NCBI GenBank assembly: GCA_001179505.1
Contig: CDMY01000616.1
Span: 1-42,127, forward strand
DNA length: 42,127 nt
Origin: Vitrella brassicaformis CCMP3155
Taxonomy: Eukaryota; Protista; Chromerida
Direction of reading: 5' to 3'
Below, piece by piece: positions 11,123-18,300 of the stretch. How positions within the stretch are numbered: position 1 is the first letter of the stretch; each line of letters starts with the position of its first letter. The notes under the pieces were generated by a model, which saw only the letters and a program-made list of their open reading frames with translations, did no database searches and was not told where the DNA came from. The position numbers were made by a program, and so were the translations under genes.

Positions 11123-11720
11123 GTGGGAGGGAGAGGGCAGTAAGGGGTGAAATGGCTGTATCTTTGACTCTTTCTTGCTGCAATTCAAGGACGGTTCTGT
11201 TTGCGAGTTTTGATGTGCTTCATGCGAGCTGGCCGGATTCTCAATGAACATTGCATGGTCATGTTCAATCGTTTTAACACGTTTCTGTCAATCAGTCTCA
11301 GTTACCGATATACCTACGACCATTAGCTAAAGTGTACAGAACGTCTGTCTGTCGCGTTAGCGCATTGCCGTCCTGTCGCGTAGTGTGTAGGCTACAAACA
11401 CAGAGGCAGCACTCTGTCGCATTTATCACCATTTGCTATCATCGTGCGCGCGCTGCGCTTGCGGCATGGATTCACGTACATATGGACGTGTGTAGCCATG
11501 GGTGCTGCACTGCCATTTGATCAATGAAATCTTACATGCAGACAAGACGACGACGAGCAATGAAATCTTACATGTCTGTATATATACGAAATGTGTATAC
11601 ATATTGTGTGTGTATACGACATACAGACATACAGACATACGTACGAACAATACGGAATACGGAAGCGATAGTGTACAGACAGAGGGAATGAAAGCAAAGC
11701 AAGCAAAGGTGAACTCCCAG

Positions 11721-14022
11721 TCAGCCGTTGTCAATGACATCTGACGACAGACAAAGAGGACAGACAGGCAGCAATCATGACACACACACATGCACGTGGG
11801 CTTGTTGCAATGCGTGTGTGAGTGAGTCAGCGTGTGTGTACTTTCGACATCCATCGTGACGACATAGGTGGGGACCACATGCTCTCTGACACACTCCTCG
11901 CCAGACGTCCTCTCGTACCCCTGCGTATGCAAAGAAAAGCGATGAGAGACATTGCATGCCGCCCGTGTCTCGTCAGGTTTGTGCGTGCCTGCGGACACGA
12001 GAGCGTCCCCTGGCGAAATATCAGCTGAATGCACTGGCCGCGCTGGTACTCGTAACCTGATGGGAGGCACACACACACACACACACACAATCACACAATC
12101 ACACCAATCGAGTCGGTTGGTGAGTGAGAGCGTCACCTCACCTAGTGGACATGCCACCTCAGGCTCGATCCTCTCCACCTTCACGCATACACCCTCCGCC
12201 AACCGGTCGCCATCAGAGCACTCCTGTCTGTATGGCCGCCTCCTTTGTCGGCAGCATCGGTCCTCACTGGCACCGCAGGTGTGGAAGTCCCGCGGGCACC
12301 TGAACTCGGGCTCCTCGTACGAAACCTCCATGCACTCGGGGATGCCATTGTCCTCATCCACGCCGCCGAGGTCGAATTCGCTGCCTGGCGGGCACTCGAA
12401 CATGGGCATCTCGCGGAGAATCTTCAACACGCACAGACACGAGAAGGTTCGTGCATAGGCAGGCAAGAGACAGGAGGGATCTGTCGCGTCGCCTTTCTCC
12501 TACCTGTATGCAGCTGTCAGGGTCTTCAGGGTCACGAACGAGGCCGGTAGGGCATTTGATGATCATTCGCTGGCAGCCGTCGCCATTCAGCTCGACGGCT
12601 GGCAGGTGCTCGCCATTGAGCTGGCGGTCGCGCTGCGTGTGGATGTCACACCCCACTGTGGCGGGGTACATATTGCGAGACACACAGGACACCTGACCTT
12701 CAACGCGCGACTCCCCATAGCCTTGCAGACAAAGAGCGTGTGTGCATGTAGGTGTCGCAACAACCAGGCCCTTATATAGTTACCTGGCGGGCACTGACGC
12801 TCCAGGGAGAGAGATATCCTCCTGACACACTCGAAATCGCCAGACTCTTGATCCACAAATCCGTCGGGACACGCCAATTGTGGCTCGACGTCCACTGTAT
12901 CGTCCACACAAGTGCTCCCTTCGTCGGTGGTGCTGCATGGACTGGGGGGCGATGCGGAATCTTCGCTGGTGAAAAGGCAGGTGGTCGTTGACTCGACGAG
13001 TGTTGAGCCACGAGGACAGCGCAATTCGCGGCGGCTGAGCTCGACGTCAAAGCACTCACCGTCAGTGAGAAGAGTCGCTGCGACACAGAACGGAGGAACA
13101 CACATACAAAGGGGAGGCATCACGTGGATGTCGCGTCTCTTCCCTCATCGTCTTACCATTGCACACATATAGGGGTTCGATCGTCTCCATCGCCACGCAA
13201 TCGCCGTCTTCGTCGAGTACCCCACCCGCCGCACAGCCAAGCTCTGGCGGCAGCGAGTCGACAGCCACGCAGAAGTCCCCCGACAAAGCACTTTTGTTGA
13301 AGCCATTCGGGCATGGTGGCTCTGCCCCCGGTGTGGCCTTGGCCTTGAGCAGGCACATCCCTCGATGCATGTCATACGGCTCGGGGCAGGTTTTGATGGG
13401 AACACGGGCCACAGACTTGACGCAGACGAGCCCAGAGGCATCCAGGTGCAAGCCCTGCACACAGACAAGGGACATGTGGGACATGTGATCGATATTCAAA
13501 CCACATAATAGGGGCAGGTCTTACTGCAGAGCAGTGGTTCTTCGGCTTGGCAGTGTACACTATCACACAGTCACCGTCACCGTCGTCCCATCCGTCCGGA
13601 CATCCGAGTGAGGGGGGGCTTTCGAACTTCATGACGCACCTGCCCCGCTCCAGGTTATACCCCTGTTCGCAGCTGAGCTCCGCAGCGGCCCACCGTCGCT
13701 CCACACATGCTATCTCCTCGTCATCCGATTCGGCGTTTCGCTCGGCACGAGAGCCCTCGGGACATGTCACCTGACACGTGTGTGAGGGATGGCAACACAC
13801 AAACCGGCAGATCTACCCTTCATTCGGCTCCTTGCCTTCGCAGGCCCGACCCCCACCAACCTGAGGTGGGATGCGGGTCATCTTGACGCATTCGTCTCTC
13901 AGCTCATCCATCTGGTACTTGTCCGGACAAAAGCTTTCCTGGGCGACAGACAGCAGAGCGAAGACGACGGAGACGAGCACCAGAGCGAATATGAAGACAA
14001 CCAACGCCGCCCTCAGCCGCAT
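11721..14022 (-). CDS. Oocyst/cyst wall protein-like (COWP/OWP family), Cys-rich and secreted, multi-exon
   Basis: Signal peptide MRLRAALVVFIFALVLVSVVFALLSVAQ, then tandem CPxG(Y/F)...C repeats (CPEG, CPDGW, CPNGF, CPRG, CPDGF, CPPG, CPLGY, CPQGY) with regular Cys spacing and acidic composition. Ends ...NVIDNG*. Confidence 0.85.
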
Positions 14023-14247
14023 CTGCCAGATCCTCGGTCCTCCAGAACACACACCAGCACCTCACTCGAGAGCACCCTCGGGTGACCAACTCACTTCCTT
14101 CGCAGACAACAAATGCATGGTACGAACGCTGTCAAAAGTAACACAATAGCGAAGCCAACCGCAGGCGAGATCGCGAGACCAACGGTTTTCTGGAGCCGTT
14201 TACTGAGGGATTCGCCCGTGTGTGTCGGTCTGCTGCCTGCCTCGTAT

Positions 14248-17079
14248 ATGGTCCCCCTTTCGATGACCTGCTCTGCTCCTCGTGACCTCTGTACGCCAGC
14301 TCTGTATGTAAGCATCTTCCTTGCTGTGTGCGTCGCCTCGGACGGAAAACACTCACTGCGTAGATACGATATCTCGGGACGCCGCAGACTGCAAGGCAAG
14401 CAATGCAGGACAGAAAAGGACAGAGCGCAGCAGGCAGCCACAGCGTGTAGCGCAGTAGCGAACATCTGTGTGTGAGTGTGAAATGAGCAGATGAGGCCAG
14501 TGTCAGGGGCGGCATTTCAGCGGCCATTGAGGCGGTCGTCAAGCCGACCCATGGGATTCAGCTCGATTCTGTCATGCTTGACCTCGCTCTTCACGCAATG
14601 GAAGACGTAAGTACCCTCGCGCACTGCACACTCACAATCCCCACCCTACCTAGTCTCACTGTGTTGCTGGGTCCGTCCGGTGATGCCTGCAGGTATTTTA
14701 CGAGAGCCAGCAGCAGGCGTCGGGAAACGCCACTTCATCAGTATCCGCGATCGACCCGTTCGGCCTATCGTCGGGTTTCGGTCCATCCTTCCAGCGACAT
14801 CGAGGTCTTCTCCGCGACCCTTCGAAGCTGCCACTCTTTGCAGAAGCGACGCACACAGTGGCAACTCAGGAGGGCGTATACGCTGATATCACCATCGATC
14901 CGAGACTCGCCACCTTTGATGGCTTACGGACCACCATGGCACAGCTAGACGCACTCAATGTCACCCACCTCACCCAGTACCGACACGTCATCGGCGGACT
15001 CGTGCCGTTCCACAACATTGCTGGTGTGGCCGAGATGGAGAGCGTGCGCGTCCTGCGGGCGTCGCAGGCCCGTGTGGTGCCCGTTGCGGACGCGTCGGTG
15101 GACAAGGAGGCTGCGTCTGCCCGAGAGATGTATGGTGTCAACGGGTCGACGGTGAGGTGTGTGGGGGTGCTATCTGACTCTTTCAACAACACCCGCAATT
15201 TTCAAGATGACATCGATGTGGTCGCGGAGACCGATACGGCTGATGGCAACGATGAGGTAGGGGAGACGAGGCAATGGATTGGGTTCACCCATCCGTGTGG
15301 AGCTGCCTTTGTCTGTCTGTGTGCAGGGTGCTAGGATAATGCGGCAGGTGCATGAGGCCCTGCCTGGCCTGAGGAGCTTCGCTTTCAACACTGCCCTTCA
15401 CGGCCAGGCGGCCTTCGCCGCGGGCATCGAGAGCCTCACCGAGCAGACGGGCTGCAACGTCCTGGTACATCAGACATTGGCACGGTGCATGCGCGGACAC
15501 CAGGCGGCTCGTGCATCATGTGTCATCAGGTGGATCATGTGACCGTGTTGCAAGAGCCCTTTTTCGCCGACTCCGTCATCGCAGAGGCGATCGACACCGT
15601 GGCCGCGAAGAACACCTCCTACTTCTCTGCCGCAGGTGAGGGGGCGGCGGCGCCACGTGCAGAGAGAGGAGGACAGCAGGCGATTGTCTATGTGTCTGGT
15701 TGGTCAGGAGGATTCGACGCTGCGGGTCTCTTCGAGACGTATGAGGACTCCGGCGTCAGCGAGACCGTCTCGCTCTTCGGACGTAAGAAGGCAAAGGGCA
15801 CAACCAGCACTGAGACAGCCACTGGGCGAGGAGTTGTCTGTTTGCCGTCTGTTGCTAATAGGGTCCCTCCCGTACACGTGGCACAAGTTTTCGAGTACAT
15901 CAGACTTCGACCTGCCCATCAGGATAGCCGCAAACACCACCGCCACTCTCGTGCTGGTCAGTGAGCGGGGGGTCAGGGGATGCATCCACCTTCATCATCC
16001 ACACACGCCTGTGTCATGCCGATGTCTGTCTGTACACGTGTGCGCAGAACTGGGCTGACCCTTATGTGTCTGCAGCTGGTACAGGCACACACAGACACCC
16101 CTTGGGCACTCATCCACGGAATCTTCCCACTGTGTTGCCCTATGCAGGCGAGTCTTCTGGTGGTGCTCTGACCGACTTGGACCTCTTTCTTTTCACGCCT
16201 GACGGCGCCGACGTGTTGGCGAGCGGCATCTCGAGCAACAAAGGGGCAGACCCCATCGAAATCGCCTACTTCACTGTAACAGAGAGAGACGAAAAGCAAG
16301 AGAGGTCGTATTGTGCATGTCCCTGCTGTGTGTCGTCTGTCAGAACGACGGCCCTGGAGAGGACTTCATCGTGCGTGTGGGCAAGTACATCACACACAAG
16401 TAGGCACACACACCAGCAGAGTCGAGGCAAGCAAGCTGTCGGCACCCTGGGCGTGTGCGTGTGTGTTCAGCGCCTCCACATCCGAGGCCGACTTCGAGTC
16501 GCCCGATCCCGACCACATCGGACTCGTTGGCTTCTCCGTCATCGACGTCCACGGCCACATGAAGGGACCCACTCAGTATGGTCACTCGACAGCTGCGGGC
16601 GCATCGGCCGTCGAAGCACCACAAACCGAGGTACGCATCACATCAAGCCAAGGGCGATGTTCATGTTCACCCGTCAATCAGGGCCCGCTGAATTTTCCCC
16701 TCCTGTATGACGCGACCGGCCAGCGGCTTCCCGAGGTCACCTACCGCCCCACAGCCGGCTTCGCATCCGCCGACGCTGCACAGGTGGTGGCCCTCGCCGC
16801 CATGATCAGGGAGAGCGACGAAGCCCTGACGCCAACAGAGGTCAACACAGTCATCCAACAGACCAATGGTGAGCGAGATGAGACACACGGGGGCTGATGG
16901 GTGCATGTGTGGTTGGTTCGTTGCTTGTCGCGACTGCAGCCAGCGTGACGGCTGCGTTGGCGGCGTTGAAGGATGGGTCGTGGAGGGCGGCAGCGGCGCC
17001 GGGCGAGAGTGCTGGTGCTGGAGACGAGGGCACCAGTGGTGATCAGCAGCACGACGAGGAGATGCTGGGGACTGCGTGA
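14248..17079 (+). CDS. Secreted subtilase-like (S8/S53-like, bacterial type) protein with degenerate catalytic motifs, about 13 exons
   Basis: The spliced model gives YGVNGSTVRCVGVLSDSF, NDEGARIMRQVHEALPG, VDHVTVLQEPFFADSVIAEAID, YFSAAG, NWADPY, TDLDLFLF, GADPIEI, PTQYGHSTAAGASAV and ALAAMIRESDEALTP, collinear with the bacterial GVxGxGxxIGVISD / DEGRAM / EPFFQDG / LTP peptidase family. Hydrophobic N-terminus followed by RRLQ. The first intron needs a GC donor. Confidence 0.8.
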
Positions 17080-18300
17080 TGACGTGTCTATGACTGTGAC
17101 GGTGACTGTGCTGTGCTGTGCTGCCATGTTGGTTGTGCGTGTGGGTCCATAGACCATCTGTCTGTCTATCTGTCTGCCTATTTGCATTTTTGTCCGTACG
17201 CACGTAGGGGGCCAGCCAGGCTGCCTTGTAGACTGGCTGGCCGGCTGGCGGGTGCGTATGCGCAAATGCATATATGCATGCAGGCATGGCGCCGTCGGTG
17301 GTTAGGTCGGTCGGTCGGTCGGTCGGCCGGTCGAGTGGATGTATCGCATTTGCGCCGTCTGGCCTCCCTGTCTCTCTCTCCCCTCTCTCTCTCTCTCTCT
17401 CTCTCTGAGCTCCACCCAGCAACGTAGTGAGACGCGTGTCAGATCGCAATGAAAGCCACCAATGCATCCATGGATGTATAGGCAATGGACACAAAATTGA
17501 GGGCATTTGGTAAGACAAGTGCGTGGTGGTGTCGTGTGTGTCTGTCGTGTGTGTGCCCTGCCTGCCTTCATGTGTCCGGTTTTCAAACTGGCCCCACGTG
17601 TATGTATGTGTGTCTGTCTGTCTGTCTGTCTGTGTGTACGCGCGCATGAGTGTATGAGAATGCTTTCATAACTCATTTGTCCCGCCTCTCTCCTCCCCTC
17701 CCTCTGTCTGTCTGTCTGTCTAATCTCTCGCTGCCTGCAGCTTGCTGTGTGTGCGTATTTGTGCACGTCCGTGTGTGTGAGTGTGTGTCGGGACATACAG
17801 ATCGATCGGCGCTTTTATACATGTCATATGGTGTGTGTGCGTGTGCGTGTGCGTGTACGTGTGTGTGCGCATGTGGCTGGTTGCACAAATATGTGCATAT
17901 ATTTACAGACATGCCTGCACACATGGACACACGTCATCTCGTGCTGACTGTCTGAGTGAATGTATAGACCTTTCAGCCCTCCTTCGTTCATCGCTTCATT
18001 GTGTCTGCTCGCTGTCTGTCGCTTCGCTTCATTCCACACACAACGCAACACATACAGTCCATCGTAGTCATGCAGATCATTCACTGTGAGTCTCTCAGTA
18101 CGCTGAAGTACCAACAGTCCCGGTGTATATCACCGTCAAGACAGCCAACCGTGTGTTCATCCATCCATCCGTCCGTCCGTCCGTCCGTCGTAAGGACAGA
18201 ATGCTCTCGCGTGCCGTTTTTGCGACGATCCAAGCGTCTCGCCCAACCAGCAGTGTTGCATCACACACAGAGAGAGGGATAGAGTTAGACAAACAGGACA
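17080..18300. repeat. Microsatellite-rich intergenic/3' UTR region
   Basis: (TC)n at about 17371-17406, plus (TG)n, (CTGT)n, (TCGG)n and (CCGT)n tracts, visible directly in the sequence. Confidence 0.8.

Follow-up and report, generated by a model that had tools for sequence, protein, structure and literature searches.

Whether a peptidase of bacterial type that resides in a eukaryotic genome is still an enzyme is the question raised by a gene of Vitrella brassicaformis CCMP3155, located at positions 14248-17079 on the plus strand of contig CDMY01000616.1 (assembly GCA_001179505.1). The whole 42,127-nt stretch, positions 1 to 42,127 of the forward strand, is referred to below as the window. 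The original prediction, made from the DNA alone, described this gene as a bacterial-type S8/S53-like peptidase that had been domesticated with about 12 introns and apparently disarmed. The present analysis suggests, with a probability of roughly 60%, that the gene encodes a non-catalytic or barely catalytic protein of subtilase fold, which would be secreted and would keep its pro-domain.

Gene model and active site

Joining of the coding segments gave a gene of 13 exons and 12 introns comprising 1944 nt and 647 codons with no internal stop, in agreement with the predicted intact multi-exon frame. The deposited protein of this locus, here called P0001 (562 aa; V. brassicaformis CCMP3155; present in NCBI, UniRef and EukProt), is annotated as 'unnamed protein product'. 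It was retrieved by an exhaustive HMMER search with exon 3 and is identical to the joined model from MEDVFYES (model residue 86) to the C-terminus, so that exons 3-13 and the last part of exon 2 are matched by an annotation made independently. Database searches were performed with exon sequences or with P0001, while the joined 647-residue model was used only in scripted comparisons. Residue numbers, such as Asp165, Glu191 and Ser483, are those of P0001; Gly274 of P0001 is Gly359 of the model.

An alignment of 249 homologs, of which 246 are bacterial or metagenomic and 3 come from Vitrella, served for comparison. The window protein retains Asp165 (the equivalent of subtilisin Asp32 in the VGVLSDS motif, Asp in 247 of the homologs), Glu191 (invariant in all 249, the catalytic His64 of S8 peptidases not being present), Asp239, His305 of the WHxF motif, His439 of the GH motif (His in 248) and Ser483 (invariant, just before the helix 486-499), together with the SDS, DEG and EPFF motifs. 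Two other positions, each invariant in 249 of 249 homologs, are changed. At position 240 the family Asp is replaced by His (codon CAT, 15536-15538), which converts VDD to VDH. At position 274, corresponding to the oxyanion Asn155 of subtilisin, Asn is replaced by Gly, which converts SAAGN to SAAGG; the Gly codon is divided G|GA by intron 5 (15635 / 15708-15709), as had been noticed from the sequence.

The surroundings of the catalytic Ser are altered as well. The family motif FFGTSAAAPH reads GFASADAAQ here, so that Ser (codon 16766-16768) is kept while GT became FA, Pro became Ala and His became Gln, and the preceding loop is deleted. About 35 residues from KPD to NFFGT (KPDxxAPDG...DGFPNFFGT) are missing inside the continuous exon 12. 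Further absent segments are FSSxG, GDLP, VGxxTSQGD and the C-terminal TAxDM...TGxGxV. The loss of the Ser context and of most of the KPDxxAPDG segment, like the two substitutions, had been part of the original prediction, and all four hold in the aligned family. Across the 89 columns conserved in at least 90% of bacterial homologs, the window protein keeps 55, compared with 77-81 in the paralogs and 60 in the lowest bacterial sequence, and is thus the most eroded of the 250 sequences by this count.

A true splice form restoring SAAGN would have changed this picture; none of 36 in-frame alternative GT/GC-AG splices around intron 5, nor read-through, yields AGN. Introns 5, 8 (16079-16147) and 11 each have a length divisible by three and contain no stop, so that their retention keeps the frame. 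Retention of intron 5 lowers the score against the family profile by 8 bits, and among the three introns only intron 11 does not lower the score when retained. Intron 11 (16631-16681) is the shortest of the gene with 51 nt, and its in-frame reading, VRITSSQGRCSCSPVNQ (VRITSSQG...), is reminiscent of the missing FSSxG; its retention adds 1.5 bits only, with TSSQG and FSSxG left unaligned by the profile. In the alignment, an intron of the paralogs falls at this place too. Two deletions of the window gene coincide with small intron-bounded exons in the paralogs P0004 and P0054, which suggests that whole exons were lost.

Family membership and predicted structure

P0001 matched no Pfam family at E <= 0.01, PF00082 (Peptidase_S8) included, no NCBIfam model and, at E <= 10, no PDB sequence. 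The exons taken singly, which are short pieces, matched no Pfam family at E <= 10 except for a weak PPC match. Both the paralogs and the bacterial homologs, unlike P0001, match PF00082. A family profile built from the 249 homologs, with the window protein excluded, scored it at E = 4e-82, which shows its homology to the bacterial DEGRAM/SAGN/FFGTSAAAPH peptidases. Its pro-domain is collinear with the bacterial proteins, as predicted, and was also aligned to pro-subtilisins in the fold search.

Vitrella paralogs were the top matches of P0001; below them came bacterial and metagenomic 'S8 family serine peptidases' in the hundreds. Searched exhaustively, exon 3 returned the Vitrella paralogs, five sequences without organism names and two repeat artefacts, and nothing else. 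Among the five unnamed sequences, three have RTX or dockerin domains and four were placed among bacteria in the tree; the two artefacts, P0003 and P0005, were strong-looking matches that were rejected because of tandem repeats. Among the matches listed, every search gave relatives in bacteria and Vitrella only, and the assignment to an overwhelmingly bacterial subtilase subgroup was upheld.

The collinear motifs of the subgroup are VGVLSDS, DEGRAM, VIVDD..EPMFQDG, SAGN, WHxF, YGHxNA, FSSxGG, KPD..PDGxNT and FFGTSAAAPH. The family profile places AAGN on the oxyanion Asn (in proteinase K-like and subtilisin chains) and GTSA on the catalytic Ser of subtilases with solved structures. The invariant Glu of DEG falls at His64, and SDS at Asp32, of subtilisin BPN' variants, in a collinear alignment with a weak E-value (0.09). 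Judged by these alignments, the subgroup looks like S8 peptidases with Glu in place of His, with a presumed Asp/Glu/Ser triad and an Asn oxyanion hole. A literature search found no paper on the biochemistry of this Glu-type subgroup.

The structure of P0001 was predicted with AlphaFold using 88 homologs as the alignment, and the resulting model had a predicted local distance difference test score (pLDDT) of 82 and a predicted template modelling score of 0.84. It matched unprocessed pro-subtilisin E and pro-Tk-subtilisin with Z of 20-21 over 264-289 residues at 4.0-4.9 Å, the pro-peptide included, and mature subtilisins with Z of about 19.5 over about 205 residues at 3.1 Å. The model of the paralog P0004, obtained by the same procedure, matched subtilisins with Z of 31-32 over about 255 of 266-275 residues at 2.5 Å. 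The models indicate that the subtilisin fold is kept, with about one fifth of the subtilisin core missing or displaced. Structure prediction, which had been proposed as a check on the active site, gave a retained pro-subtilisin fold, weaker than that of the intact paralog.

In the predicted secondary structure Asp165 follows the strand 160-164, Glu191 opens the helix 191-202 and Ser483 precedes the helix 486-499. Residues 278-422 are predicted as strands at high pLDDT, and residues 531-562 have pLDDT below 50. The top Foldseek matches of the model include the pseudoproteases CspC and CspA.

Taxonomic range and origin

The family was found at 437 loci in bacterial genomes sampled one per species, and the best 80 of the 437 loci span more than 10 phyla, including Bacteroidota, Pseudomonadota, Planctomycetota and Cyanobacteriota. 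In the ESM Atlas, the clusters nearest to the protein are bacterial throughout (100%). Bacterial members carry type IX secretion system (T9SS) sorting tails, RTX repeats, or PPC, FG-GAP or dockerin domains.

Among eukaryotes, no member besides those of Vitrella was found in the exhaustive exon-3 search; the word-index searches list 120 matches and missed known Vitrella paralogs, so they cannot prove absence from other eukaryotes. One transcript of the marine eukaryote transcriptome set MMETSP, P0245, belongs to the family. Since it branches among bacteria in the tree, and since its near-identical twin P0269, from a Joint Genome Institute (JGI) contig, fills an intronless contig of 2474 bp, P0245 is probably a bacterial contaminant of the culture.

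Phylogenetic analysis was based on two trees of 111 and 63 rows, calculated under LG+C20 by a quick search and with no outgroup. The four modelled Vitrella proteins formed one clade in both trees, with a support of 99 in the Shimodaira-Hasegawa-like approximate likelihood-ratio test, and within it the window protein grouped with P0054 and P0004 with support of 92-95. The end branch of the window protein is about 1.5 to 2 times as long as those of its closest paralogs (1.24 vs 0.76-0.87 in one tree and 2.21 vs 1.06-1.23 in the other). The bacterial backbone was without resolution; cyanobacterial proteins were the nearest by path length and identity, without support. The homology search and phylogeny proposed as a check on horizontal transfer gave relatives in bacteria and Vitrella only among the matches listed, but did not show nesting within a particular bacterial group. 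From the taxonomic distribution, a bacterial origin of the Vitrella family is considered likely.

Paralogs in the Vitrella genome

The window gene is not alone. The Vitrella genome contains at least nine loci of this Glu-for-His subtilase family, five of them on one contig, C295 (at about 5.8, 44.5, 384, 475.6 and 518.7 kb), and others on contigs C554, C938, C964 and C514. Greater divergence is seen at C964 and C514, the latter carrying two oppositely oriented copies separated by about 1 kb. The canonical motif set is kept at six loci at least; of these six, five have SDS and five VDD, SAGN and GTSASAPH are kept, and the DEG-type Glu pattern was picked up in four.

Three paralogs are annotated, namely P0004 (A0A0G4G343), P0054 (A0A0G4ERJ4) and P0006 (A0A0G4H1A3), with 11-19 introns each. 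Several intron positions are common to the window gene and its paralogs: the one after DE|G is shared with P0006, the one before the WHxF region occurs in all four genes, the one before the NDGPGE-type exon is shared with P0004 and P0006, and the one after the GA..V.A strand with P0054 and P0006. The paralog P0054 is transcribed and spliced, as two JGI transcript contigs (L098 and L099, sample 3300017148) carry the intron-free frame; in these transcripts the 19 predicted introns of P0054 are really removed.

The window gene has the composition of its paralogs. The GC content at third codon positions (GC3) of its exons is 0.71, against an intron GC of 0.57, equal to the paralogs, and the cosine of its codon usage to theirs is 0.95 in frame and 0.62-0.63 out of frame. 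The original prediction had proposed an old horizontal acquisition. The gene is indeed rich in introns and long resident, but it does not stand for a lone acquisition: it is one of at least nine loci and belongs to one Vitrella clade. Therefore, any transfer predates the expansion of the family. Comparison of the copies indicates that the disarming is a later event in the window paralog alone.

Proposed function and alternative explanations

The following course of events may be proposed. The ancestor of the Vitrella family would have come from a bacterium long ago, by one old transfer to the Vitrella lineage, and the transferred gene would then have gained a signal peptide, host codon usage and many introns. 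It would next have been duplicated, giving rise to a Vitrella-specific expansion of the Glu-type S8 subtilase subgroup, of which the window copy may be a divergent duplicate that still has its pro-domain, subtilase core and beta-rich insert. Much later, this copy would have lost the oxyanion Asn (now Gly), the Asp of the VDD strand (now His) and the Gly-Thr before Ser, as well as two or three loop or strand segments beside Ser and the domain's C-terminal end. The product would probably enter the secretory pathway and fold as a pro-subtilisin, with neither efficient cleavage nor removal of its own pro-domain, and would then work through binding, whether to substrates or to the active paralogs, in the role of decoy, trap or partner. 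Gene structure, family membership, residue losses, paralog relationships and shared introns are shown directly, and the retained fold by prediction; bacterial origin, secretion, loss of activity and a binding role are what we infer from these data.

Several points weigh against this proposal. Asp165, Glu191 and Ser483 are all kept, which is not the state of a classic dead enzyme, and the roles of Asp240 and Glu191 are assigned by alignment, in which the match of Glu to His64 is weak (E 0.09) and differs in one printed alignment. The use of a homolog alignment in structure prediction can flatter the fold of an eroded protein. The 90% cluster of P0001 has a single member, which comes from genome annotation, and the N-terminal exon and signal peptide are putative. 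Bacterial origin is deduced from the taxonomic distribution, the trees having no outgroup.

The retained residues could alternatively belong to a peptidase that is still active, with an altered mechanism or specificity. In such an enzyme a backbone amide, water or another residue would replace Asn, and remodelled loops would alter the choice of substrate. Subtilisin in which Asn155 has been replaced still catalyses, although with a kcat that is two to three orders of magnitude lower. Asp165, Glu191, Ser483, His305 and His439 are in place, the core fold is predicted with high confidence, and the maintained open frame, splice sites and codon usage argue for selection for some function. The original inference, a secreted pseudo-protease or a protein of altered specificity, is partly supported: invariant residues including the oxyanion Asn are lost, but the triad positions are kept, so an attenuated or altered enzyme is possible. 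Such an enzyme would, however, have to work with two otherwise invariant positions changed and with the Gly-Thr before Ser, the FSSxG strand and the loop ahead of the Ser helix absent. The P0001 model aligns to about 50 fewer residues of the subtilisin core than the P0004 model does, and the protein, the most eroded of the 250, fails the Pfam S8 model. Continued peptidase activity is therefore somewhat unlikely. A decaying or silent copy, that is, a pseudogene in the making whose frame is not yet broken, would account for the exon-sized losses and for the longest branch among the closest paralogs, and the protein collection holds no transcript-derived entry for the window gene, while P0054 and P0006 have such entries. 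An exact 36-nt piece of exon 3 found no match in metagenome contigs, but a positive control from the P0054 transcript likewise found none, so this result is uninformative. However, after more than 1 substitution per site the 1944-nt frame of 13 exons is without stops, frameshifts or broken splice sites, its codon-position GC and codon usage equal those of intact paralogs, and 55 conserved core positions, the triad included, are retained. Decay is highly unlikely, because a neutral, long-branched frame of 13 exons would not stay undamaged with host codon periodicity.

The origin of the family might also be other than a bacterial acquisition, being either an ancient eukaryotic gene that was lost almost everywhere or a bacterial contaminant in the assembly. 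The Vitrella clade does stand on a long stem with no supported bacterial sister, eukaryotic members could lie beyond the matches listed, and the MMETSP transcript P0245 belongs to the family. Contamination is hard to reconcile with 11-19 spliceosomal introns per copy, host-like codon usage, at least nine loci on large contigs adjoining eukaryotic genes and a spliced transcript of one paralog. Ancient vertical descent is opposed by the exhaustive exon-3 search, in which Vitrella alone represents the eukaryotes, by the nearest Atlas clusters, which are all bacterial, and by the position of P0245 among bacteria, with its twin on an intronless 2.5-kb contig. Taken together, both versions are quite unlikely. 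The preferred reading remains that of a non-catalytic or barely catalytic, pro-domain-bearing protein derived from a family of probable bacterial origin. A bolder version of it would make Vitrella the only known eukaryotic branch of the bacterial Ser/Glu/Asp clade, and the window copy a neofunctionalised binder, locked by its pro-domain like CspC or PCSK9 and trimmed partly by the loss of small exons, possibly with conversion of the FSSxG stretch into intron 11; this version is speculative and, as a whole, improbable.

Gene organisation and neighbourhood

All exons lie on the plus strand, and the introns are 51-95 nt long; eleven have GT-AG borders, and intron 1 is GC-AG with a good donor (AAG|GCAAGC). 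The putative exon 1 (14248-14395), which is not in P0001, comprises a Met start, a hydrophobic stretch ALYVSIFLAVCVA, RRLQ and the GC donor. It is the best candidate for the first exon, its donor being the best one in phase; it aligns weakly to the first exons of the paralogs, and its signal-like hydrophobic stretch resembles their clear signal peptides. The predicted signal-like N-terminus with RRLQ is present in the DNA, but use of this exon is putative, given the GC donor and a frame that is also open back to an ATG at 14113. Exon 2 (14491-14606) encodes the N-terminal pro-region, model residues 52-88 of which align with the 'LVKSIPxTARRLFKPxNxQLDTLLYQLHF' region of the paralogs, and P0001 starts at an internal ATG at 14598. 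Because a stop codon lies just upstream of exon 2, the acceptor at 14490/14491 is forced and an upstream exon must exist.

Exon 3 (14693-15256) encodes the pro-domain and VGVLSDS, with the Asp codon at 15176-15178; its last two residues are DE, the Glu codon being at 15254-15256. It is followed by exon 4 (15327-15464; GARIMRQVHEALPG...CNVL), with the helix after Glu and the next strand, and by exon 5 (15530-15635), with VDH, EPFF and YFSAAG and the first base of the split Gly codon. Intron 5 (15636-15707), of 72 nt, splits this codon at the position of the oxyanion Asn, and exon 6 (15708-15782) opens with its remaining two bases, GA, to give Gly359 of the model. Exons 7-10 (15862-15956, 16048-16078, 16148-16275 and 16344-16399) encode the beta-rich insert that separates the oxyanion strand from the GH motif, with a weak PPC-like Pfam match in exon 9 (E = 0.047).

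Exon 11 (16471-16630) contains PDPDHIGLV and YGHSTAAGASAVEA, with the family GH motif retained. Exon 12 (16682-16868) runs from PLLYDATGQRL to YRPTAGFASADAAQVVALAAMI, carries the Ser codon, lacks KPD..PDG..NFFGT within continuous DNA and gives a weak match of a mycosin model to the Ser helix (E = 0.0026). Exon 13 (16940-17079) adds a short acidic low-complexity tail and the stop, and stands in place of the family TAxDM...TGxGxVDA end.

Upstream, at 11400-14052 on the minus strand, lies a multi-exon gene in head-to-head orientation; its Cys-rich product starts at 14052 with a signal-like sequence and contains repeats of a 'CP.G...C' module. The intergenic region 14053-14247 leaves about 200 bp between the start codons of this gene and the window subtilase. 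A conserved gene pair was considered and rejected, since no close copies of the Cys-rich gene occur beside the subtilase paralogs. Directly after the stop of the window gene, positions 17080-17800 consist of simple repeats (GTCT/GTCG-type tetranucleotides and CT dinucleotides), which create long spurious frames on the minus strand, such as 16667-17647.

Significance

The gene probably adds to two classes already on record, pseudo-subtilases and gene families of bacterial type that reside in eukaryotes. The family illustrates, with dating by gene structure, how a secreted protease of bacterial type became established in an alga near the apicomplexan parasites. Its many introns, some common to the copies and some not, provide material for studying intron gain after gene transfer, and the series from intact enzymes to an eroded copy could show the catalytic needs of Glu-for-His subtilases. 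As a single-gene result it is modest, adding one more probable pseudo-enzyme to a genome that already has several.

Comparison with known systems

The bacterial Glu-type S8 subgroup is collinear with the window protein over the pro-domain, catalytic domain and beta-rich insert at 27-34% identity, and SDS, DEG, the first Asp of VDD, EPxF, the WHxF His, GH and Ser are common to both. The window gene differs in being eukaryotic, with 12 introns. Its product is without the second VDD Asp, the oxyanion Asn, GDLP, FSSxG, KPD..PDG..NFFGT, the GT before Ser, the Pro-His after it and the C-terminal TAxDM..GxG, as well as without an accessory T9SS tail, RTX, PPC or dockerin domain. It is related to the subgroup by descent but, lacking the full motif set, is not a typical member. 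The paralogs P0004, P0054 and P0006 resemble it in their identity of about 30-38%, Vitrella-type N-terminal pro-region, signal-like N-termini, host-like codons and common introns; they differ in keeping all catalytic motifs, in matching Pfam S8 and in having small exons without equivalents in the window gene.

Sedolisins (MEROPS S53) likewise combine a subtilisin-like fold with Glu instead of the subtilisin His, and pro-kumamolisin was among the weaker fold matches. The sedolisin Asp four residues after Glu is absent, this position being Ile195 here and Met in at least 90% of bacterial homologs. The oxyanion residue of the family is Asn as in S8 (Gly here), while S53 has Asp, and the Asp of the family follows the first strand, another S8 trait.

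The pseudoproteases CspC and CspA of Clostridioides difficile (PDB 6mw4, 9pr8) share with the window protein the subtilase fold, the retained pro-domain and a beta-rich insert. They arose by duplication beside active relatives and lost catalytic competence (PMC6636752, PMC7200643, PMC12880746). There is no specific sequence relationship between them and the window protein, and they belong to another organism and another biology, that of spore germination. The Csp proteins lost triad residues, whereas in the window protein the triad is intact and the losses concern the oxyanion Asn and surrounding segments. PCSK9 offers a further likeness, being another subtilase that acts by binding, the mode of action that is here proposed for the window protein.

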